A stretch of 64,000 nt of DNA from Hyphochytrium catenoides. Taxonomy: Eukaryota; Protista; Hyphochytriomycota. The notes beneath the pieces are model-generated. The model had not been told where the DNA came from and made no database searches. It worked only from the letters and a program-made list of their open reading frames with translations. Of the stretch, positions 29,457-59,400 are shown piece by piece; the first letter of the stretch is position 1; each line of letters starts with the position of its first letter. A program made the position numbers and the translations under genes. Where the stretch lies: positions 62,001 through 126,000 of the forward strand of contig FLMG01001160.1 of NCBI GenBank assembly GCA_900088475.1, given 5' to 3'.

Positions 29457-29995
29457 NNNNNNNNNNNNNNNNNNNNNNNNNNNNNNNNNNNNNNNNNNNN
29501 NNNNNNNNNNNNNNNNNNNNNNNNNNNNNNNNNNNNNNNNNACAATCATGGCCATCGCTAGCGCGAGTACTACTTTTGTGACGACGAAAGGAAGCTATGG
29601 TAAATGGCCGGCTCTCTACTACAACTGGTCGTGATAACGTGGATTTCCGATGCCATGGAGCTACATTGACCTGTGGAAAGGAGCATCGCATTATAGGGTC
29701 GTTGGGACATTCGGTCCAAACGTGCTGGATTGGCAGCAGGGACAACGCCGCTCCCGCAAAGCTAGCTCCACATTATTAACAAGAATAATAGCTCCTTTCA
29801 TCCCTTCGTCTTGGGAAGACATAGTGATGTGAGCGCAATGATGACGTAGAATAGGTTTGTTAGATAATTTACAATCCTTGCATGGCGCGGAGGCGAGGGT
29901 AGTTCTGAGGCCCATCTTCTCCTCCCTGGCCTGTCAGCAGTCCAGTTGAGGNNNNNNNNNNNNNNNNNNNNNNNNNNNNNNNNNNNNNNNNNNNN
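29457..29995. other. Assembly gaps (N runs 29457-29541 and 29952-29995; others at 38099-38140 and 48720-48755)
   Basis: N characters in the sequence. Confidence 1.
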
Positions 29996-36219: not shown

Positions 36220-39189
36220 CTATGGCGATCTCGGTCTACAGTCTAACACCTCCTGCGTGATGTACTCTGATATTGCTTGGGTCCTAAGAAGAAGCTCCAG
36301 AAAGTGCTGGTGATCCTTGGGACAACGCTGGACAAAGTCATCCTCATCCAGCACGGCTATAGCCTCTGAAGCGTCTCCAATAACGAGACACTGCTCCTTG
36401 ATACCCAGAAGTAGTTCCGCTATCAGGGCATTGCACTGGCGAGCTATAATGGCAGCTGGCAGGACTGTGCATTGTCGGCTTCCATATAAGGTGGGCTGCT
36501 CAGGACCATCGCAGCGAGCATTATGCGGCTCCATGGCGTCTTGCAACTCCTCTCGTACCCTGTAAAAGGCCTCAGGTAGACGCTTCCCAGCCTCTGCCAG
36601 GGGATTCCAGCATACTGCCTCTACCTGTTCTGTCCCGTAAAGCTGGCCGTTGTCCAAGTCTACCACCACGACTGGCGATCCAGATCCTACACTAGCTAAA
36701 GTGAAGTACTCGGAGCAGATTCCTACGATAAAGGGGGTGGGGCACTCAAGCAGTGAGCCAAGCCTTTTGGGCAGTACAGGCGCGTAAACGTGGCACCATT
36801 GCAATGGACGAAGCAGATAACGTAGAGCTTCCCCGCACCCAGCTAGCCAGGCGTGTGATGTTGAGTAGAATAAAATTCGACATTCTAGCAAGGCACACGC
36901 TAGAAGCTGCAAGGTACTTGAGACACCCAGCCGCTCAAGCAAGGCGGAGATGTAGTCGGAATTTACATCCTCACCGACCCTACTCCAACTGCCAGTCACT
37001 GGAGACATTAAAGCCTCTTCGTCCTCCAGGTAAGGACTCATTGCCGACGGTCTCGACGAGGACCTATGAAATGAGCGGGACCTGACATATGCGCGGCTGG
37101 ACCTTGATACCATAGCCTCTAGTATGCTCTCAACTTCGGAGAAGGCACTCTCATCAACAGAGAAGTCTGGTTTCATGAGCGTATTTTTGAACACACGGCG
37201 GAGCATTGGTAAGATAGGACATCGTGATAGGATGCAGTGGCCCCGAAGGACAGTGGCCCCTAAGACAGTAGAATTGTTCTGCTTTTCATTCCGCTCCTCT
37301 TCGTTCCGAGCGTTGTAGACATAGGAGACTCCATAGTAGTCGCCTGAGGGCACTGAGTGAACGAAAGGAAAAATAGTCGGCAGCGGAGGACGTTCCGAAG
37401 GTTGAAGCAGTCTCTCGTCGGGCACCAAGAATGGCTGTATGCGTCTGTAGAGTGCTAAACACTCGGTCTCTCCTTGCGGCCCGGGATGCAGTTTTCGCAA
37501 ATGTATGGCTTTAACACTTGACGTAGGTTGGCTCCATGCTACCTGATCCTGGGTTAGACTTCTTGATACTCCCTCCCTAACCTCAAAAGAGACAATCAAT
37601 TCTACTAGAGTGTCCTCAGAAGCCATGTTCCGAAGAGAGTGGTGAGGGATCCGGAAGACAGGGCTCTGATGAATCTGTAAGCCTTTTGGAACCTCTGCTT
37701 GCTTGATTAGTTGGCTGAGCTTAGGGCTGGTTGGAGGCCTATTCCTCTTATCTGTAGAGTCCAACACTTGGCTATCTTCTAGAGCTTCCCTATCGTCTAA
37801 TAGGGCTTTATAGAGCTTGCTGCGGAGGAAGCGTGGATAGAGAGACGCTTCCATGGTAACGAACAGCTCCTACAATATTGAGAAGCAAACATGAGAAAGA
37901 AATTCACCTTGACTGAGCAAACAACCCCCTGCTGAATCTGAGCCCTGTCTCTCCTTGCTTTTCTTTCATTTGGTCTTCTCATTAGGTATCTCCCTTGCAT
38001 AGCCCACGATGTAACGTACTCTAACCCGTTCTAGCTGATCAACCCTACCTGCTGGATCCTTTGCAATGCAGACATCAAATGCGCTTTGCCATCCTCCTNN
38101 NNNNNNNNNNNNNNNNNNNNNNNNNNNNNNNNNNNNNNNNACGCGCAAGAACTGGCTTCAGAGTAAACTCAAGCTGCATCCAGATAAAGAGAGTCATGTG
38201 CTGTCTGGTCTGCAAGAGAAAGAGCAGAAAGTAGTGCGCTGCCCTGGTGTTCTGCAATGCGGCGCGCAAGCGCGTTAGGGGTGACAGGCACAGAGAGATA
38301 TGAGTGTAACACTGGCTCTTACAGCTAGAGTCTTGTCCAAAGGCAGATACTGCCCCACAGAGCCTAACTCGTTCACCATCTCCGCATACTGTGAGCTCCC
38401 CTGAAATCTGGGGAGCTCTTTTTTAGTGAGGTCGTTCTCAATGATGCGTTGGAGGTCTTCTAACGCGGCATCTAGAGTGTCCACGCTCAACAGCTTCTTC
38501 TTCAAAGAGGCTACAGCGTTGCTGTCAAGCCTCAGCGCTGAGGCTATTTCGAAGGGGGAGCTTGACTGAAAGTATTTCTCGTATATCCGTATGCAGTGGG
38601 ATCTCCTAGGAGGTAGAACAGTCAGTGAGGGATAGATAAGGCAGCTCAGCCATGTAATGCAGGGGTTCTCTTAGGTGTCTATAGAACTCTACTCGCACCT
38701 CTGTTCTTTAGAAACCATCTTGACTTGGTAAATCTGTAGAAGAACTAGAACTTTGGACCTCCGGACGTCGGACGATAAGTACTCGAGGAAGTAAGGCAGC
38801 CTGTTAGGATCCTTGATAAGAAAGTCTAGCGACAGTTGCTCTTCTCTGTCCTTGAACAGTCCAGGACTGGCCCTTGGTCGCTCAATCGTTACAGCAGTGG
38901 GGTGGATGGTAGAGTGTTGTCGAGCTTGACTGATTAGGCCGCGGTTACTTGAACGTCCTCTAGTATCTGGAAGAATAGCACCAACGGAGCTCGGCACTAT
39001 GGCCTCCATTATCGCTGACCTAACCCCCACAGATCCCGCAGCAGCCAAGCTGCTTGGGCGGCGCGAGTTTGAGTGCGTGGGTGCATTCTCAGATTTAGCT
39101 GGTGCACCTGAAGGGGACCCCGTCGGGTATCCTTCCTCTTCGCCGAACAGCCATGATTCCAGCCTTCTGGCTCTATTAAGGAGAGACAT
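36220..39189 (-). CDS. RGS-RGS-DENN domain protein (putative G-alpha GAP and Rab GEF)
   Basis: RGS-like 1: LSLDFLIKDPNRLPYFLEYL...IRIYEKYF...ELPRFQGSSQY. RGS-like 2: LPLDKTLANTRAAHYFLLFL...MEASLYPRFLRSKLY. DENN core: ALLECRILFYS...LLRPLQWCHVYAPVLP...LECPTPFIVGI...VVVDLD; dDENN: FLELLLRTQAISEYI. An N-gap at 38099-38140 leaves the central splicing unresolved. Confidence 0.8.
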
Positions 39190-48100: not shown

Positions 48101-49348
48101 ACAAAACTGCAGTGTCAATTAGAGCTTCTGTTATCCTTAGTTGACGTCTATGTTCCCTGTGGGGAGATTAACACCCCTTTTTTCGATTGAGCGTCAGTCA
48201 ACCATCAGTTCAGTTACATCCTCTATTCCTTGCTCTCTCTCCGGGTACTGCCTGCATTCGTGTGGCTTTAGCCTTCAATCGATCCCTTACGGGTTATACA
48301 CATGTTTCAAACTCTTAAATCTTCAATTGTGCTTCACATCCTTATGTCTGTTTAGCTCATCAAGGATGAAGAGAGGACTTTTCAGATCATCTGCGGGCTG
48401 TTCTCAAGCCTAAATCTGATTAGGATATTCACACCCGGCTTTCCGTTGTTAGATGAGACGTTCCGTCAGGTTAGGGGACACTCTTTCCATGTCAACCCCA
48501 TCCTTCTCTTCGTATGAGATTGTTGTTCATCTCTAGCTAACGTCAATTTCAGCGCCCAGCTCGGGCTTGAATGTCTTCATATACTTTTTTTCATTCTGTC
48601 TGTCCTTTCCCGGACAGGCTCCTGCCCGTCGTACGCAGTACTCATAAAGCTCTTGTCTCGTTTTCATTCGACCAACCTGGCCCCCAACCTCCATCAACAT
48701 CCCCTTCTCCTCCCCCCTTNNNNNNNNNNNNNNNNNNNNNNNNNNNNNNNNNNNNTGCCCAGCACTAGTCCAGCATTTCCATCACCTGGGTCTTTCGTTG
48801 TCGATGTTTGCTCCTCGGTGGCTTCTGACGCTCTTCACGTCATTGAAAAGATATCCTTCATGTTGACCACTATCCGACTCTGTGCAGGCTGGCATCATCT
48901 ATCTCTTGCGTCTGTTGCTGCTTCCCCGGGTGTAACTAATTATCGCTGTATGGGACATCAGAGCCTTTACTGCTATCCGCCTGTCGGCATTTGATTGCTT
49001 AATCGCCACATTAGCTGCGAGGTTTCTCTTAACTGTTGACTACCCTGCCTGCAGAGTTTATTTACAGAACCTGGGATGTGCTGCTGGTAGAAGGTTGGAG
49101 AACGATGGTTAGTGCGTCTCTGGCATTGCTAATGGAAATGGCGCCTAGCTTGCTGGAGGAGGACTCGCTGGAGGGGTGTCTCACGTTATTGCGGCATCCT
49201 AGGTACAAGATGAACCACTGTAAAATTGGTCGTGGAACTGGGCTCACTCTTTCATATACCTAGGCTACGGGCTGGCGCAACGCCCCAAGACCTTATCGGC
49301 AGAATGCACTCCATATTAGTCAGTCCACTTCTAGTGGACTTGGTGTAG
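45137..49348 (+). CDS. TBC-domain Rab GTPase-activating protein, multi-exon (5' structure uncertain)
   Basis: EIDIDVGRS (IxxDxxR arginine finger, ~47755), LRRVLSAFAVQQPEVRYVQGMNYTAAMLL (YxQ glutamine finger), IFTPGFPLL, RWFLTLLTTLPAEFIYRTWDVLLVEGW. TAG at 49346-49348. Confidence 0.8.
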
Positions 49349-49888: not shown

Positions 49889-52800
49889 TTACTCGTCTTC
49901 CGACTCTGGAGGCTTATCCAGGCCCAAAATTTCCTCCAATTTGTTCTGGAAACGGAGGCGGTATTGCTCTGGAGGAGCAGCACTGAGCCCATCGGCATCC
50001 TTTCGGAGAAAAGTAACCTTGGAGAACCGCTCCAGACGCTTCTGAAGTGTCCTACGGACGCAAATTGAATAAGTGAGGAGTTTAAAGAACATGACATAGA
50101 GGAAGACAACACAAACGAAGAGTACAGCGGGACCACTTTGTAGCTGCCTTACCACTGCTGAAGGATGTCGATGAGTCCGAAATAATAGTACGCAGGCCCC
50201 ACGACAGTGCTGGCCTTCTTCATATGCTCGTTCAAGGACCCAGGCTCCTGTCGCAGACACAGCCAATTACCATTTTAGCACGGGCAACGCGGGACCAGCT
50301 TGGCAGAGGCAAGAGGGAAAACGCCTCAAAATAGGGTATAGATCTCCGCCCTCCCCCGCCCCCGCCCTTCCTCTGGGGCGACTTAACCGAGAGACACAGC
50401 ACAAAGATGAGTGTGAAGGGCTAATGGAAGAACCTTGTTCATGTCATTGGGGGATCCTTGGACAGAAGAGGCTTGGCCCGCGAGTGAGATTGAGGTGCCC
50501 TTTTGCTGATTCATCTGTAAACAGAAGGCGGAAGCCGTGTTTCAGATGGGCCATACGCTAAGATTCCATGACCGTCCTGTCTACCATAACATGCGGTCTT
50601 ACCTCTGCAACATGATCTGCATTGACGTTGTATGTCATGTTATGGACACCGATGAGAAGGGAGTAGTCCATGATTCGACGCCGAGCCAGAAAGTTGGAGT
50701 CCTTGACAATGATATGGTTCAACTCTTCCGCCTCTCTACGGTTCATCCGCACCTGAACATTGAACAATCAGCAGTGACGCTGTGGTCTCTAGCTTCTCGT
50801 TTACTTGTCTCTCTCCCTGTTACCAAGAAACTTCCTATCCTATACTGCTTAAAGCTTCTCTCCAACCTCTCTTAAGTAATCATGTGCCTTTCGAGTTCTC
50901 ACGCCCTTGTTTCGCATCCTAAGACCACTACGATCGTTCATCCTCCTTTCAAGACATCAAGGCACGAGAGCGCGCTGTCCTTCAATCGACTTTGTAGGCC
51001 CTTACCTTCTTTGTCAGGTCATTATCCTTGAGTACGGTGTCAGGTTCATGCGAGCCGCCTCTAGCTTCACAATTGAGATCCTTCGATTGCGGCCCATACC
51101 TATTGCAGGAAGATATGGGTTCAGGTCAGACGACATGGCGACAACCACAGGCAAGGAGGACGGGACGAGTTCCTTTGCTTGATGATGAGGTGATTTCCAG
51201 TCCAAGAGAGGCAGTCATAACTCAAGGGGTGATCTCGTAGAGAATATAATGGGAAGGAATGCGACTATGGTGGAGGACAAGCAAAACCAAAAACTACGCT
51301 AGAGCCATTCCCAGAGAGCCTTCTGACCTGTACTTCGCGTTGCAGTTCCGGCAGGTAACCAGTGACCCGTCCTTCGGCTTCTTGTGGGTGCGGTTAACCC
51401 AAGAACCCTTGATGTCATACCTTGGCAGTAGCAAGCGTGGTGTAAGAATAGGCTCAGCCATCACACCTCACAAAGAGAGGGGCAAGATCCACAGATTTGA
51501 AGATTGAGAAGGGCAGCCGATATGTGGCGATAAATCAAGCGGGACTAGTGCTGGGAGAGAGGAGCCAATAAGGTACGCCCTCCCAAGTCAGAAGTAATAT
51601 ACTGCGTCACTAAGAAGATCTGGTTTTGTCTATACCTCGCATGTATAACCATAGCTGTGTCAAAAACATTGGCCATGACAAAGAAGTAGAAAGTCTTCTT
51701 GTACATCTTGAAGTGAACAGCATGGCAGCCATAGAACCTAAAATAACCAGATCAGCGTGGCACTGTAAGAAGACTGATGATGAAGAGGGGAGACAGGTCT
51801 CGTGCTAGAAGTCAGTTGAGACTACGTGTAGAAAGACAGAAAGCAGGGTAAGCCGCAGGCAATCGGACAAAAGCGCGAAGGAAGATCTCAAGGGATGGAT
51901 TAGAAGCATCATCTGCCAATGCCAACGAAACCAAGTAGGGCGACGGCCCTAATAACAAGTAAAGACCAGTAAAGAAGGGTAAGGCATCTGTCGCCCTTGG
52001 TGTTGCAAGGCAAGATTCTAGGAGTCATGGAGCTAGCAACAGTGCCAACACGGTTCAATTGAGAGAAGACCTTGAAGGTCCTAACCTTATTAGCAAGCTC
52101 TTGGGGTTGTTCTTGAGGTGCTCGCAGTAGTGCTCGGCAATTCTCCTTAAAAAGGTGCTTTCCTCTGGACTCATACTCTTAACGATATACTTCTGGTCAC
52201 TTGAGAAGTACATGAAAGCGCCGCTAGCACCTTCACTAATCCGCTCCTTCGTAATCTTTGATAAGGAGCTGCAGTAGTCCTCGGTCGAGACTCCAGAGAA
52301 CTCCCTGGTCGTGAAAGAGTCAAGGTTAATAACCGAGCAAAAGGTAGTCTGGTGCTAAAAGTACAACGACCATGATGACTCCAACGACACCTTGTGGAAG
52401 CTAAGTATAGTAAGCAAGGAAATTCTGAAGATCGACGAAACTCTAAGAACCGGAGAGTTTATGGAAGTAGCGACAAATAAGGGCTGTGGCATCGGACCTG
52501 ATCTGCCGGAAGATATGCGGGTAATAGTCGGTGAACTCATTCTTAGCACTTTGCTTCATCTCTACCCCTTGAGGCGGTTCCAAAATCTTCGTCACCTCAG
52601 GGGTATTTGCCCCAACCTCAGAAAGACTCCGCACTGCCTGTAAAGAAGTACAGAAGCGTTACGTGATTGGCAACGCTCCAAAGCACGGAAGGAGCCAAAC
52701 CTGCATGATGCCCCGGGTAGTATAATAACGAATCTCACTCCTGAGAGCAGTGTTTAACTGTGGATGTAAGTCCACATCCACGTCTGCTCCACTCTTGGTT

Positions 52801-55712
52801 CCCTTCACTCGGTCCTTGGGGGAAAGATAGGGCACGCCGGGTCAGCCGCTTCCGCGCATTGTTCACACCCCTTATTGCTGTTGAGCTCACCTCTGATCTA
52901 AACTCGTTGATGCTGAACCAGACCACAAAGTCAACATATCCCTTCGCAGTGATGAGGAAGGGCACCAGCTGCAAGGCGAGAGGATTTGGGGTTAATTAGA
53001 AGATGATCGGAGGCGTTCGAGCTACTGAAAGTTACCCAAGAGACTAGTCAGCACTCTAGTTGAGACTAGCACAAGTTGAACCGTAAGGTTCCAAACAAAA
53101 GAGTCACGCTATTGCTGTGACCGCAATCGTAGGCAGTGACCAAAGAGAGGCTGAGGCAGAAGGGACAATGTGCACCCAGACTATAGCTTGCTACCGCCTC
53201 CATTCCTCACCTGCTTCAACCAAATGTCATTTCTCGATTTTAAGCCATCGATTTCACCAGTTTCATCGTCATATCGATAGAAGTCTGAACCAAAGGTGAA
53301 GAGGAAAGGTATGTAGAAGCAGAAGACAATAGACCAGTAGAGAAGAATCGCCAAAACGTAGAGAGTGACCGAGCGAAGCACCCTCATGCGTAAGTCCAAT
53401 GTCTTGAGCAGCCCTTGACGAAGACGGTTCCAGGCGAAGAGTGTAACATAGACTCCGAAACTACAATTTAGATGGAAGTAAAAGAGGAAGGAAGGTCAGC
53501 CATTGTCTCTGCTCGACGGTATAGCCGTTTTCTGAGCACACCTGTAGAAGATGATAAGCCAAGCATAGAAAAACACCCACGAGCGCCAATTTGCTGCCGT
53601 CGGGTTCGTGCTTCTCATCTGGACATTGGTCCAGCAAAAATCGCCCACATCCGACTGACCAGAGAAGCTCTCTTCGGACGCTAAGATGATGGCGGCAATC
53701 GCCGAGGAACCCCAGACTATTAGATGATAGAAGCGAACATTCCGCTTATAGTCCGTGAAGGGATTGGTGAGTGATTGGCGAAGGTCGATGGTCATCATAA
53801 AGAACCAGGCCTCGGCTGCGAAGATTGTAAACTCAATAATTCCCGCCTAGGTAAAGAGAGCCAGAGAAGACAGCAATCAGGAAAACGTCTAGTCCAACGG
53901 CGCAGCAATAGAGCGACACATAATACATTAAGAGCCGGCCGGGTTTAAGAGCATATAGCCCTCAATCTAGTCAGATAAGGGAGAGGTAGCAAGAGGAAAG
54001 CGCCGGAAAGAGAGGACAAATGCGGCTAATGGAGAGCCAGAGCTTTAAAGTGCTAAGGTGACTCTAGAGCGGAAAATGGGACACGGCAGACGCTGACAAG
54101 ACAGAAACAGAGAGGCATAGAGGGTACGTTTAGATTATTTCCTCCTACCGTGACTCGACAAGCAGTCTTATTAGATATTTCCAGGTTGCTCCCACAGGAA
54201 TCAAAGCCGTCGGAGCACTTCACCACCGAGGTGATGAGCACCACCAGGCTGAACACAAGATCGCAACAGGAGCGGTAATAAATCAATGGATTTGGATGCT
54301 TCTTCCATGTGCGTCGCGTGGAGTAGGTAAAGACCACCGAAAGACAGGAAATAACGGAGATGACACTGCCTGTGATGGTGCCTATAGGAAAAATTGGCCA
54401 CTCACTACCAACGAACGAAGGGAAAACACGAGTGCTTAGTGTAAGCCAAATGAGTTCCATGTCCAGCGAGCAATAAAAATGAACGTGCGACGAACATTAT
54501 AGTTGGACTACATAGCAGAGGTTCAAGCAGTATATCCCGCCCTAGAGAACTTAAAGTCAAAGGTACTGAGAGTATCACAGCCAGACCAGAAGATCAAAAT
54601 GATGCAGTAGCAGCAGATATGAGAGAGCCAAGCGTGTGGCTAGCAGCATTTGACGAGGATCACCTTCCAGGAGGATCAAAGTCGGCGAAGATCAAGCTTG
54701 TCACAAGGCCAATTAAGAAGAGGAGGAACATCGTCAACTGCTGCCTCCAGTTCTTTCTCAGAAGGGCTGAGCTCGCAGACAAACATCCTTTTCCCTCGTC
54801 TCCACCAATGGTGCGGTCAGAAGGGTGCATGCTTTGGATGTTTCTGGCTGAGTCTAGTGGGACCTCATTGTCGCCCGGCTTTCGTCTTCGTCCCTCTGCC
54901 CGTTTCGGCTCTCGGTCTTCCTGCAAGTCCTCACTGCGGTAGCTGAGCAACATGAGCCTATATGAAGCAAGATACTATACATACTTCCCCAATCTTCTGT
55001 CTCCCACGCTCTCTACCTCTGAGCTCGTCTATTCCTGGCATAACTCTTTTACCATTCCCAATCTAGACGTTTATCCCTGTAACCTACGTACCCGAAGGCT
55101 CGGAAGTCTGGTTCATACTTCGGGGAGCGGTCAATGTACGAAGACCGAGAGCTGGTAGGTTGGTTCGGAGGAAATCTCTGCTCGTCAACCTCAATATCCA
55201 CCTAGCAAGGGTATGAGAAACTCCACGTTAGCCATAAGACAATAAGTGACTTCCCCGCAAGGATACACTCTTACAGCAGGAAGTGGATCCGGAAGCTGTC
55301 TTCCACTTGCTGGTAGACCAGACGGGTCTACTCTTCCGCCTGCCGGACGTGAAGGTGCTGGCTGTAAGACGTTTGCCGCGTAGCCTCCCGCCACCATGCG
55401 AGTGCCCGGAGTGTAATAGCCGCCAGCAGCATAACCCGCACCGTCAGGACCATTTCCTGCAGCAGCTGCAGCATACCCTCCGGGCCCTCCTGCAGCAGCA
55501 GCGTAACCTCCTCGGCCTCCAGCTGCCCCATACTGTCCATACGTAGCAGCATAGGATCGACCCCCGCCAGGTCCTAGGTAGCCTCCTGCAGCTGTTGTTT
55601 GTCCGGCATAAGCTCCCGTTGGGCCATTGCCATACATCCCTGCTGCTTGGTAGCGGTAAGGGTTGCCATTTCTTGCCCGGCCATTCTCTTCCTGCCCCGT
55701 AGAGTTATCCAT
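49889..55712 (-). CDS. GPCR-PIPK: 7TM receptor fused to a phosphatidylinositol-phosphate kinase, with a long N-terminal extension
   Basis: cAMP-receptor-like 7TM region (GSVISVISCLSVVFTY, HPNPLIYYRSCCD, SLTNPF, FCW, KGYVDFVVWF). PIPK motifs: FTDYYPHIFRQIR, SEGASGAFMYFSSDQKYIVK, RFYGCH, YDIKGSWVNR, LKDND, IMDYSLLIGVH, YFGLIDILQ, SAAPPEQYRLRF. 5' exons 55712-55275, 55201-55092 and 54942-54664 splice in frame to 54404. Confidence 0.88.
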
Positions 55713-56226
55713 CCTGGTGTCGAGAGAATGGAGCTCACCGAAGCACTTGAAAGTCCTCTTGGGTTAGAGTGGCAGTCCAGCTTCACTTGTTGGGCTCGTT
55801 GCAAGCATGTGCTTGGGTCATTGTGTTCGCAACCTGTCAGATGTATTGGACTTCAGAGGGTATGAAAGGAGTGCATTGGGAACGTTGCATATCATCACCT
55901 GCACCAGATGCAGATCATCCAACTCCTGCTCCGGAGCTTCTTAAAGCTTGTTGGAGGTTTGCAGACAACTTGGAGACGTGGTCACTCGTGATAGCAGGCA
56001 ACCGCTAGCAGAGAGGCCACTGATGATGAAGGTTCATCTTGACTTTGGTGATGGGGTAAGGAGACATGAAAGAGGCTGGTAGTTGAGGAAGGTGCAGTTC
56101 AAGAGGAAGAGACAGCGGGAAAGGTGTCAAAGAGCGAGCTGAGTGCGATGAGTGAGAAAGAGACCGGAACGGAAGAAAGAGACTGAAAAGGGTTGTGGGG
56201 AAAAAAGTGCGAGGAGGACATAGAGA

Positions 56227-56420
56227 ATGAGAGAGAGAGAAACAGAGAGCGACAGAGACAGAGTCAGAGAAAGTGGGCAGTGGAGGAAGAGGAAGAGAAA
56301 GAGAGGGGAACGAGATAAGGAGAGAGAGAGAGAGAGAGAGAAGGGCAATGAGAAAGAGAGAGGGGTGGGAGACAGAGGAAAACATACAGACAGAGAGAGA
56401 AAGAGATAGAGACAGGGAAA
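56227..56420 (-). repeat. Imperfect (GA)n tract, read as (CT)n on the GPCR-PIPK sense strand
   Basis: Directly visible GA dinucleotide runs. Confidence 0.9.
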
Positions 56421-59400
56421 CAAAGGTGGGGGATGTAAGAAGTGCAGTTGGTGATGCTGTTGCTCTGGCTCCTTCATCTGATCGAGCCCACAATCGCCAA
56501 GGGAGACAGCTTACCCGCGAGACAGAGTGGGATACAGAGCAACCGAGAGGCATGGATTGAGACACTCAATTCCTGGTATAAAGCATCGCTTAGGGAGCCA
56601 AACGTGCAAGACAGAGAGAGACAAGAAAGGCAAGAGAATTAGGAGTGGACTAATGCGGGCTGCATTATTCCCTTTCCTCGCGGCCATAAAATGCCAAAGC
56701 ATGAGGCTTTACAGGTCTTATTACTGCATTGTGAATATGATAAAAGCCTTCCTAGGAAAGATGAATGATAACTACACATCACTGATTGAAGGGAGTAGTA
56801 ATGTCATAACACTAGGATCTAAACTCTCATCTGGTCATACTACTTCCACACAAAACATTGATCAGAACCCAAATACACACACTGCTTGCGCTGTAAACAT
56901 GACCAACAGCGGACTACAAACTTCATTGCTCTTCTGGAAGAGAAGCCTGATGGTGATGGACATTGTTCTTGGTGGTTCACCTCCTCCTTCTTCTCCTTCT
57001 CCCCTTATTATTGCTGCTGAGGAAGTCAACTCCTGATTCTTCGTTTACTGATGATGAGCGTGGGAGCAGATTGAGCTGAAGCCGAGATTACGGCGGTATC
57101 TTCTTTAAAAAAATTCTTGTTTCTTCTTCCTCTTCTTCTTCTGCCTTTCTTATTCCTTTCATCGTCTCCTTCTTCTTCTCTCTCCTTTTTCTTCTCTTCC
57201 CCTCTTCTTTATAGTAGTAGCAGTAATGAGTTCTATAAAGTAGTAGTGATCATGGAATTAAAAAAAGACGATAAATCTCTACCAAGAACAATAATTTTTG
57301 TTCGATGAGACTAATATTTTTTATTATAATAGAGTAGACAGTGGCAGCTCATCATTCTCTACCATGAGCAGCAGCTCATCATTTTCTTCCATTATAAAAG
57401 AGTATCAGCATCTTTCTTTGTTACCTGTTTTGGTCCCCTGCGCATGCGTCCTGCTCCTGCCACCACCTTTTATCATCATCAAGTGGCCTCCTTCTTGCAT
57501 TTGGTTGCTCGTCAGCCGTCAGCCGCCTCCTCCTCCGTCGTTTTCACTCGTTGATGAAGCACGACGTATTATTCTCATTCTTGACCCATAGTTTCATGGC
57601 GGTCGTGTTCGGTACAGAAGAGGATATCACGGATAAGGGAGAGGAGGAGATGGTCCGCCAGTATAGCGTTGTCGTATCATCTGGCTGCTGGTTGATTGCC
57701 GAGTATTGTCCCCTGGCCTATTATCACGTCATTTGCTATTCCTGTCCTTTCCGTGTGGTTGAAGTGGAAAGAAGCTCTTCTTCTGGCATTATTAAACATT
57801 AAGATTCCAGCCAGCAACAAGTGGATAGTAATGCCTCTCGCGAGGAAAAGGAAATAGCGTAGCAAGAAGGTCACTAAAGTATCGGGCATAGCCCGGGCTA
57901 GTTCTTCTTCCGATAATGACGATTGCTGGAAAAAATCCTGTGGGATGGAGGGGGCTAGAGATTTATGATGCGACAGTGGATATAATGTACCTACTTAGCG
58001 ACGAGGAAGGACTATTAGCACTTTCTCAGATATTTTCAGTAACTTGTCATTGCTACGTCGTCCTGTGATTCTCGATAGTCAATATGGTGCGATTATTTCA
58101 ATAGCTCCGCCGGCCATACCAGTTCCTGGGTGAACTGCGGCTAGTTCGCTTGCAATAATGATGAACATTAGGAGAAAGGAATGCCGTTCTGTCCAATAAT
58201 AAGCAGCAAGGAAGTGTAGTAGTAGTCGCGCACTGATGCAGTGACGTTTAGCCCCCTCACTCCTTATGGCAGTTAGAGTTTATTCGTTAGTTGCTGAAGT
58301 CACCCTTTCTGGGTATCCCTGAACGAACAGTTGTAGGTGGATGTCCCACGTCTGCCATACAGCACAGGAGGGCGGGGATGCTTCTGCGTCGCCTCCCCCA
58401 CTAATAATAATCCTACGCCAAAGTACTCCAAGAATTTTTGCCGCCTCTTTACATCCTTCACGCAACTTTCATCATACTATATATAGACTTCAGTGATGAT
58501 GGTAAGTTGTGTGCACCTAGCAGGTTCTTGGAGGCTTTTGGGGGGGAGTTGGCTCTTTCTGCAACATATCTCCCATGGCAGTATTCCCGGCTGCTGGTGT
58601 CTTCAAGGCATCTGGAGGATCTTATTATTGATTATTAACTTTATAGTTATTGCCCATTTGTTGTCGGACAACAAGAAGTAATGGTAGAAAGATGCTTTCT
58701 TCAACCTTTCTTGCTTTAATGTTTTTTGTTGTTATCATATAATAGTGGCCCCTACGTTTGGAGGGCTTCTTTCTAAAGATGCTTCCACCACCAGTAAGTG
58801 ACAGACAAAAGAAAGAGATGAGTACATCATACATAGTGCCTTCTGATTGTCTGGGCTAAGTCAGTTTTAAAGTAATAATATTTCGTCTATTTGGGGGTAG
58901 ATAGTAGCTGGACAAATGCACGAACCGCAGCCCCTTTCAAACAATAGCGAAATGCAAATAGAAGTCCTCCACTACTCTTCTAGGCCAACAATAGAACTAC
59001 ATGATACGCTGTTTCATTTTGCTTGGGGAAAAACAGAGGAGGGCAGTACATCATCATCAGGGCGATGATGGAGGCATGATGCGAGCCACCACTACTTCAG
59101 TGAAGAGCAAAATGTAGTTCTACTGGCTATCCACGTCATGGGCGGGCGGTGGTGATCAAGAATTTTATGGCCGCTTTTGCTGTAATAAGGATGCCCAACT
59201 GCGGGACACTTGTTGGCTGGACAAGGAGAAAGAGTGGGTTAGAGACGAAGAAATTTCGTGGCGGCAAGACTCAGGTTGACAGACCAAGGTGTGCTTCTGA
59301 GAAGTAGTTCCCCTTTCTTAGTGTCAATTCGATGGAAGTGGACCCATAGAGTAACTTTTGCCGAAGCTGTCACGGCAACAGATCGCTATAAAATGTCATC

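Follow-up and report, generated by a model that had tools for sequence, protein, structure and literature searches.

A GK2-like GPCR-PIPK gene of Hyphochytrium catenoides with a conserved helix ahead of its seven-helix receptor and a candidate Gly/Tyr/Ala-rich N-terminal tail

We analysed a 64,000-nucleotide stretch of the Hyphochytrium catenoides genome (contig FLMG01001160.1, positions 62,001 to 126,000, of assembly GCA_900088475.1; hereafter the window, to which all coordinates refer). The locus described here is the 5′ end of a multi-exon, GK2-like GPCR-PIPK gene on the minus strand, whose stop codon lies at 49891–49889. Ahead of the canonical transmembrane helices TM1 to TM7 the gene encodes an additional hydrophobic segment, TM0, which is conserved in relatives and lies outside the seven-transmembrane (7TM) fold. 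We lean towards reading the product as an eight-helix receptor-kinase, with the N-terminal side of TM0 facing the cytosol and a tail that most likely starts at ATG 55712 and includes a Gly/Tyr/Ala-rich exon.

The identity of the gene was established exon by exon, with exons numbered E1 to E7 from the 5′ end (Table 1). Searches used one exon at a time; exon pairs were joined only for tests of frame and splice sites. Pfam and tblastn identified a cAR/Frizzled/secretin-like 7TM domain in the downstream exons (with a weak Pfam Frizzled match in E4), then the linker motif LR(x)9GI, by which GPCR-PIPKs are recognised (PMC5784254, PMC12716839), and finally a PIP5K domain. Receptor and kinase exons share one strand, carry no intervening stops after splicing and are collinear down to the stop codon with oomycete GPCR-PIPKs, which bears out the family assignment made in an initial annotation of this sequence. 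The closest named relatives are oomycete proteins annotated GPCR-PIPK, Pi-PIPK-D2 or PiGK2, and these annotations also describe the group retrieved when the Hyaloperonospora orthologue was used in a word search. With E5 as query against 1.84 billion representatives, 255 matches were obtained at E ≤ 1e-3, the nearest being oomycete proteins and environmental contigs; a metagenome scan with E5 returned no relative. The gene contains at least 12 introns. Eight of them are anchored by homology, measure 76–348 nucleotides (nt) and carry G at donor position +5 without exception. In the H. catenoides genome paper (PMC5795050), introns average 208 bp in length and number 3.64 per gene; GPCRs and PIPKs are not mentioned there.

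Oomycete GK2 proteins (Pi-PIPK-D2; Phytophthora infestans, Plasmopara halstedii and Hyaloperonospora brassicae) show the same order of tail, TM0, cAR/Frizzled-like 7TM domain, LR(x)9GI motif and PIPK, with identities to this gene of 40–52% in TM1–TM2 and 41–60% in TM3–TM4. Common to both are the HPNP loop and, around TM0, a preceding basic/aromatic stretch, an initial Met and a terminal Ala-Asp. Unlike its oomycete counterparts, the H. catenoides gene is intron-rich, and two features of their tails, the GWFHAK motif and the acidic DESSEDS block, are absent from it. Its membership in the GK2/PIPK-D2 subfamily is putative, read from the closest named matches and the alignment of the TM0 block. 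If E1 is included, the tail is Gly/Tyr/Ala-rich, whereas oomycete GK2 tails are Ser/Pro-rich.

TM0 occupies residues 68–86 of E3, with a mean Kyte–Doolittle hydropathy of 2.21. The initial annotation had presented this eighth helix as particular to the gene; it proved instead to be a family trait of oomycete-type GPCR-PIPKs. Taking TM0 as a second hydrophobic segment 20–30 residues before TM1, we found it in 47 of 55 homologues (matches that start with Met and contain the HPNP loop after TM1), preceded by tails with a median of 55 and a maximum of 221 residues. It is ~19–20 residues long and in most relatives lies 20–221 residues from the N terminus, including the P. infestans orthologue, in which it follows a tail of ~170 residues. 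A profile of GK2 tails, run against 1110 pieces of open reading frames (ORFs) from 40–64 kb of the window, matched a single minus-strand piece, the E3 ORF (E = 1.2e-4). In alignment, the order KNWRQQ, Met, helix, Ala-Asp in this gene corresponds to NNYKIQ, two variable residues, Met, helix, Ala-Asp in the orthologues.

The trait recurs within the same genome, in which we located at least seven further loci of the same 7TM type (contigs C183, C3113, C345, C3386, C1536, C3556 and C3415), several with PIPK exons. Among the paralogues inspected, those on C183, C3113, C345 and C3415 carry the extra helix and that on C3556 does not. On these four contigs TM0 shares an ORF with upstream coding sequence, and on C183, C3415 and C345 the same ORF also holds TM1. 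Platysulcus, a deep member of the stramenopiles, has a GPCR-PIPK without TM0 (P0092), so the helix is not universal in the family.

We folded the orthologue P0005 in place of the protein of this gene, using AlphaFold2 and a 56-row alignment. The model (predicted template-modelling score 0.80) shows a helix at residues 41–60, with a predicted local distance difference test score (pLDDT) of 95–98, followed by seven helices. Structures of Frizzled, Smoothened (SMO) and class A receptors match the model at Z 20–22, and only from residues 59–65 onward, which places TM0 outside the canonical 7TM fold. An eighth membrane helix, as first annotated, is thus backed by conservation in relatives and by a high-pLDDT helix in the orthologue, and TM0 is very probably a true internal helix.

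The charges around TM0 bear on its orientation. The 15 residues before it hold three Lys/Arg and no Asp/Glu, and those after it no Lys/Arg and three Asp/Glu; across 90 homologues, the mean number of Lys/Arg is 2.46 before and 0.57 after the helix. This positive-inside bias points to TM0 acting as an N-in signal anchor, with the tail in the cytosol, which as a prediction agrees with the cytosolic N terminus proposed initially. TM0 would then set the orientation of TM1, and a disordered tail and the C-terminal PIPK should lie on the same cytosolic face. The loop between TM0 and TM1 has a median length of 7 residues and contains an N-x-S/T site in 32 of the 90 homologues; the supposed extracellular N terminus would be reduced to this loop of ~7–14 residues. 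GPCR-PIPKs have been described as 7TM proteins with an extracellular N terminus (PMC5784254, PMC6033456, PMC3206951), and an extra helix before TM1 goes unmentioned in the GPCR-PIPK papers we examined, these three among them. GPCRs with cleavable signal peptides likewise have a hydrophobic segment before TM1 that would orient TM1; unlike such peptides, TM0 is internal in most relatives and modelled as a packed helix.

Upstream of TM0, three candidate exons contribute 146 (E1), 37 (E2) and 70 (E3) residues before the Met of the hydrophobic segment (ATG 54731). Their coordinates and phases on the minus strand, and the sum of 253 residues, are as initially annotated. The reading frame of E1 is closed upstream by a stop at 55766–55764, and the next ATG, 55712, opens the exon; with A at −3 and G at +4, its context is strong. 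E1 ends in phase 0, with GTAAGA immediately following. The peptide consists of 25% Gly, 21% Ala, 10% Tyr and 10% Pro. It contains the repeats already noticed in the initial annotation, with a G-Y-A-A type motif occurring about nine times, and a single RGG.

Codon usage argues that E1 is translated. Its log-odds score of 0.162 compares with 0.106 ± 0.065 for training ORFs and ~0.02 for stop-free noncoding windows, and lies above all 80 such windows of equal length. The frame in question is clearly the best of the three (0.162 against 0.061 and −0.251). The proportions of Gly codons equal those of the training genes and the motif recurs with synonymous codon changes, which together indicate selection on the peptide. 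On this evidence E1 is highly likely to be coding. E2 is also gene-like: its log-odds score of 0.145 falls within the top 1.7% of stop-free noncoding windows of equal length, and its guanine-plus-cytosine (GC) content at the three codon positions is 0.56/0.44/0.56, against 0.56/0.45/0.55 in the training set.

Several observations favour attachment of E1 to the GPCR-PIPK gene. E1 adjoins the gene, no other gene lies within ~6 kb upstream, and the donors of E1 and E2 carry G at +5, as do all eight anchored introns. That E1 might instead end a minus-strand gene lying upstream was ruled out because 55.8–61.5 kb holds no long ORF. An AT-rich environmental orthologue (P0032) encodes TM0 and TM1–3 in one ORF behind a 189-residue tail rich in Gly, Ser and Tyr. 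E1, which the initial annotation placed in this transcript, is coding-like and well positioned, but it has no homologue in any orthologue tail and faces a competing start codon (below); we judge that E1 probably belongs to the gene.

Splicing itself does not discriminate. The three introns are all GT–AG, the codons split at E2/E3 and E3/E4 encode Gly and Ser, and the frames hold through to the 7TM exon at 54404 as the initial annotation had stated. Enumeration nevertheless gave 19 single-intron and 170 two-intron stop-free paths with consensus-like sites from E1 into the frame of E3; since so many arise by chance, we dropped in-frame spliceability as evidence of attachment. E2 is required for the frame in the two-intron path. 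A single 300-nt GT–AG intron (donor 55274, acceptor 54975, exon resuming at 54974) also keeps the frame and skips E2, so that either intron structure is possible if E1 belongs. For intron 3 only two in-frame GT–AG solutions exist, both using the same donor.

Several observations weigh against a tail that begins in E1. BLAST and profile comparisons found no homologue of E1 or E2 in any orthologue tail, so that comparing orthologue N termini yielded a shared TM0 but no counterpart of E1; neither exon was among the matches of the GK2-tail profile, and Pfam returned nothing for either. A search of the H. catenoides genome with E1 recovered only E1 itself and no paralogue copy, a word search with the 173-codon ORF that results if intron 1 is left unspliced gave nothing at E ≤ 0.01, and the ESM Atlas gave no usable match to E1. 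Combined Gly and Tyr content is 0.35 in E1 and at most 0.25 in any homologue tail. To these points is added the abundance of chance splice paths. On the wider reading of the gene, the intron 3 donor lacks the usual G at +5, and the topology is a prediction from charge bias and an orthologue model. Two apparent leads were discarded: a by-eye likeness between E2 and the acidic block (DESSEDS) in the tails of oomycetes, which is out of order relative to the other motifs and gained no support from BLAST or the profile, and Gly/Tyr-rich upstream exons in paralogues, of which we found none except a mildly Gly/Tyr/Pro-rich stretch on contig C183. A weak match to the GK2-tail profile also appeared on the plus strand at 55083–55202, antisense to E2, across a GSY...GWF stretch (E = 0.013, 1110 pieces); it lies on the wrong strand and is therefore probably due to chance.

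These observations fit a different start, in which the GPCR-PIPK begins at ATG 54953 or ATG 54830, keeping TM0 and a cytosolic tail, and the Gly/Tyr/Ala ORF is a separate gene of 173 codons ending at 55191 (stop at 55193–55191 in the unspliced frame). Both ATGs are in the frame of E3, which ATG 55712 reaches only through splicing. Starting at ATG 54953, the tail would have 75 residues, typical of a family with a median of 55 and close to the apparent 58 residues of the closest paralogue (contig C3113), and the lack of likeness between E1/E2 and orthologue tails would follow. The initiation site itself is poor. ATG 54953, which lies within candidate intron 2, has a weak context (C at −3, T at +4), and an out-of-frame ATG in good context (54982, opening 42 codons) precedes it by 29 nt. 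Between the upstream ORF's stop and ATG 54953 there are only 238 nt, room that the 3′ end of one gene and the promoter and leader of the next would have to share; E2 would be noncoding despite its codon usage, and the word search found no stand-alone E1-like protein of 95–303 residues. We regard this arrangement as possible but unlikely.

The Gly/Tyr/Ala ORF might also be untranslated, a low-complexity, GC-rich leader or promoter stretch that is open by composition. At E1, five of the six frames (three sense and two antisense) stay open for 70–90 codons, random sequence would by a rough estimate yield ~0.7 ORFs of this length per 64 kb, and third-position GC content is 0.38 in E1 against 0.55 in training ORFs; the missing homologues in the word, own-genome and ESM Atlas searches point the same way. 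The score of frame 1, above every noncoding window, together with the gene-like Gly codons and the synonymously varied motif, makes this explanation improbable.

What such a tail might do is a separate matter. In our preferred reading, with the tail from ATG 55712 and E1 joined through E2 or by the single 300-nt intron, the tail would be an intrinsically disordered, fast-evolving region that could influence trafficking, clustering or kinase activity. The Gly/Tyr-rich low-complexity domains of FUS, hnRNPA1 and the annexin A7/A11 N termini resemble E1 in composition only (Tyr at regular spacing between Gly and Ala residues, a single RGG, predicted disorder). No sequence relationship to them was found in word and ESM Atlas searches, and E1 differs from them in being rich in Ala, with little Ser, Gln or Asn. 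The description of E1 as prion-like accordingly holds for its Gly/Tyr/Ala low complexity and spaced Tyr, as a matter of composition, and condensate formation by the Gly/Tyr-rich stretch is speculative. We give little credence to a more elaborate combination, in which the eight-helix layout, with tail and kinase in the cytosol, holds for GK-type receptors of oomycetes and hyphochytrids, a FUS-like tail in this species clusters the receptor-kinase into membrane-bound condensates and so tunes local phosphatidylinositol 4,5-bisphosphate synthesis, and the TM0 Met starts a tail-less signal-peptide isoform.

Translation solely from ATG 54731, which would turn TM0 into a cleaved signal peptide and leave an ordinary 7TM receptor with a very short extracellular N terminus, is very improbable: TM0 starts with a Met in this gene, as it does in each of the ten GK2-type orthologues aligned, the segment ends in a small residue (Ala) followed by Asp in most orthologues and the Saprolegnia parasitica gene model SPRG_22110 (P0201) begins at this Met, but the KNWRQQ stretch directly upstream has its counterpart in oomycete orthologues, E3 has coding-like codon usage from its start over 45 codons, most homologues have the helix after 20–221-residue tails in the same ORF, the paralogues on C3113 and C345 lack a Met at the start of TM0, and TM0 packs with high confidence in the P0005 model. 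From the conserved upstream residues, the coding-like start of E3 and the upstream extension of the paralogue ORFs, we conclude that translation very probably starts upstream of 54731. Given that GK2-group proteins share the TM0 Met and that a Saprolegnia model starts there, an additional tail-less isoform, as raised in the initial annotation, is possible. Among public oomycete GK2 models, some start at the conserved TM0 Met (P0201) and others at an upstream conserved Met (P0061); both kinds are likely truncated annotations or alternative starts.

Table 1. Features of the GPCR-PIPK gene and its 5′ flank (window coordinates)
Feature	Coordinates	Strand	Basis
E1, candidate first coding exon, 146 codons/438 nt	55275..55712	-	ATG, codon usage
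Candidate intron 1, 73 nt, GTAAGA...TAG	55202..55274	-	G at donor +5
E2, candidate exon, 110 nt	55092..55201	-	Codon usage
Candidate intron 2, 149 nt, GTACGT...CAG	54943..55091	-	Contains ATG 54953 and ATG 54982
E3, membrane-proximal tail and TM0, 279 nt	54664..54942	-	GK2-tail profile, BLAST to orthologue N termini, codon log-odds 0.103
TM0, extra hydrophobic helix, E3 residues 68–86	54684..54740	-	Hydropathy, charges, conservation, orthologue model
Intron 3, 259 nt, GTGATC...TAG, between TM0 and TM1	54405..54663	-	Both flanking exons homology-supported
E4: TM1, first intracellular loop with HPNP, TM2, first extracellular loop	54149..54404	-	40–52% identity to GK2-type orthologues
E5: TM3, TM4, start of TM5	53542..53846	-	Pfam Dicty_CAR 21.9 bits (cut-off 21), 7tm_2
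E6 (53460–53211), intron, E7 (52968–52891): TM5 to TM7	52891..53460	-	tblastn with oomycete GPCR-PIPKs
LR(x)9GI linker motif	52707..52745	-	Read in tblastn match
PIPK domain exons and stop codon	49889..52354	-	Pfam PIP5K E 5.6e-19, 3.5e-10 and 1.1e-4 on three exons; tblastn
CT/GA-rich simple repeats ~500 nt upstream of ATG 55712	56222..56425	.	No long ORF at 55.8–61.5 kb, GC content 0.45

The flanks of the gene are sparse. Between 55800 and 61500, ~6 kb contain no ORF over ~130 codons other than low-complexity ones, GC content is 0.45 against 0.49–0.52 elsewhere, and the CT/GA microsatellites listed in Table 1 may belong to a promoter or leader region. Beyond the 3′ end of the gene, at a distance of ~1.1 kb, lies an assembly gap (a run of N at 48720–48755); further gaps are at 29457–29541, 29952–29995 and 38099–38140. 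In the Albugo laibachii PiPIPKD2 model (P0195, 1389 residues), ~600 residues with LysM- and TLDc-type Pfam domains precede the GK2 tail, the result either of merged gene models or of a genuine N-terminal fusion to the cytosolic tail.

The gene is an addition to a known family in a previously unsurveyed lineage. Dictyostelium RpkA and the wider GPCR-PIPK family likewise join a 7TM receptor to a C-terminal PIP 5-kinase domain; RpkA is described as a seven-helix protein, against the eight helices proposed here. Phosphoinositide turnover, phagocytosis and development are the processes in which these proteins have been described to act (PMC3206951, PMC5784254). A 2018 survey recorded the family in only one non-oomycete stramenopile and did not cover hyphochytrids (PMC5784254). 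Since this hyphochytrid has a GK2-like gene and no fewer than seven other loci of the same 7TM type, the family is both present and expanded there, and the expansion would then predate the split from oomycetes.

The layout with TM0 is a family-level point, of which we found no earlier description in the GPCR-PIPK papers examined. If TM0 is a true membrane helix, these receptors would have almost no extracellular N-terminal part with which to bind a ligand, and gene models starting at the TM0 Met are probably truncated. The long, variable tails would then lie in the cytosol beside the kinase, which would alter how regulation and localisation are studied in plant- and animal-pathogenic oomycetes. 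The Gly/Tyr-rich tail of H. catenoides is a candidate for lineage-specific variation on this layout and, if confirmed, would be a curiosity for localisation study.

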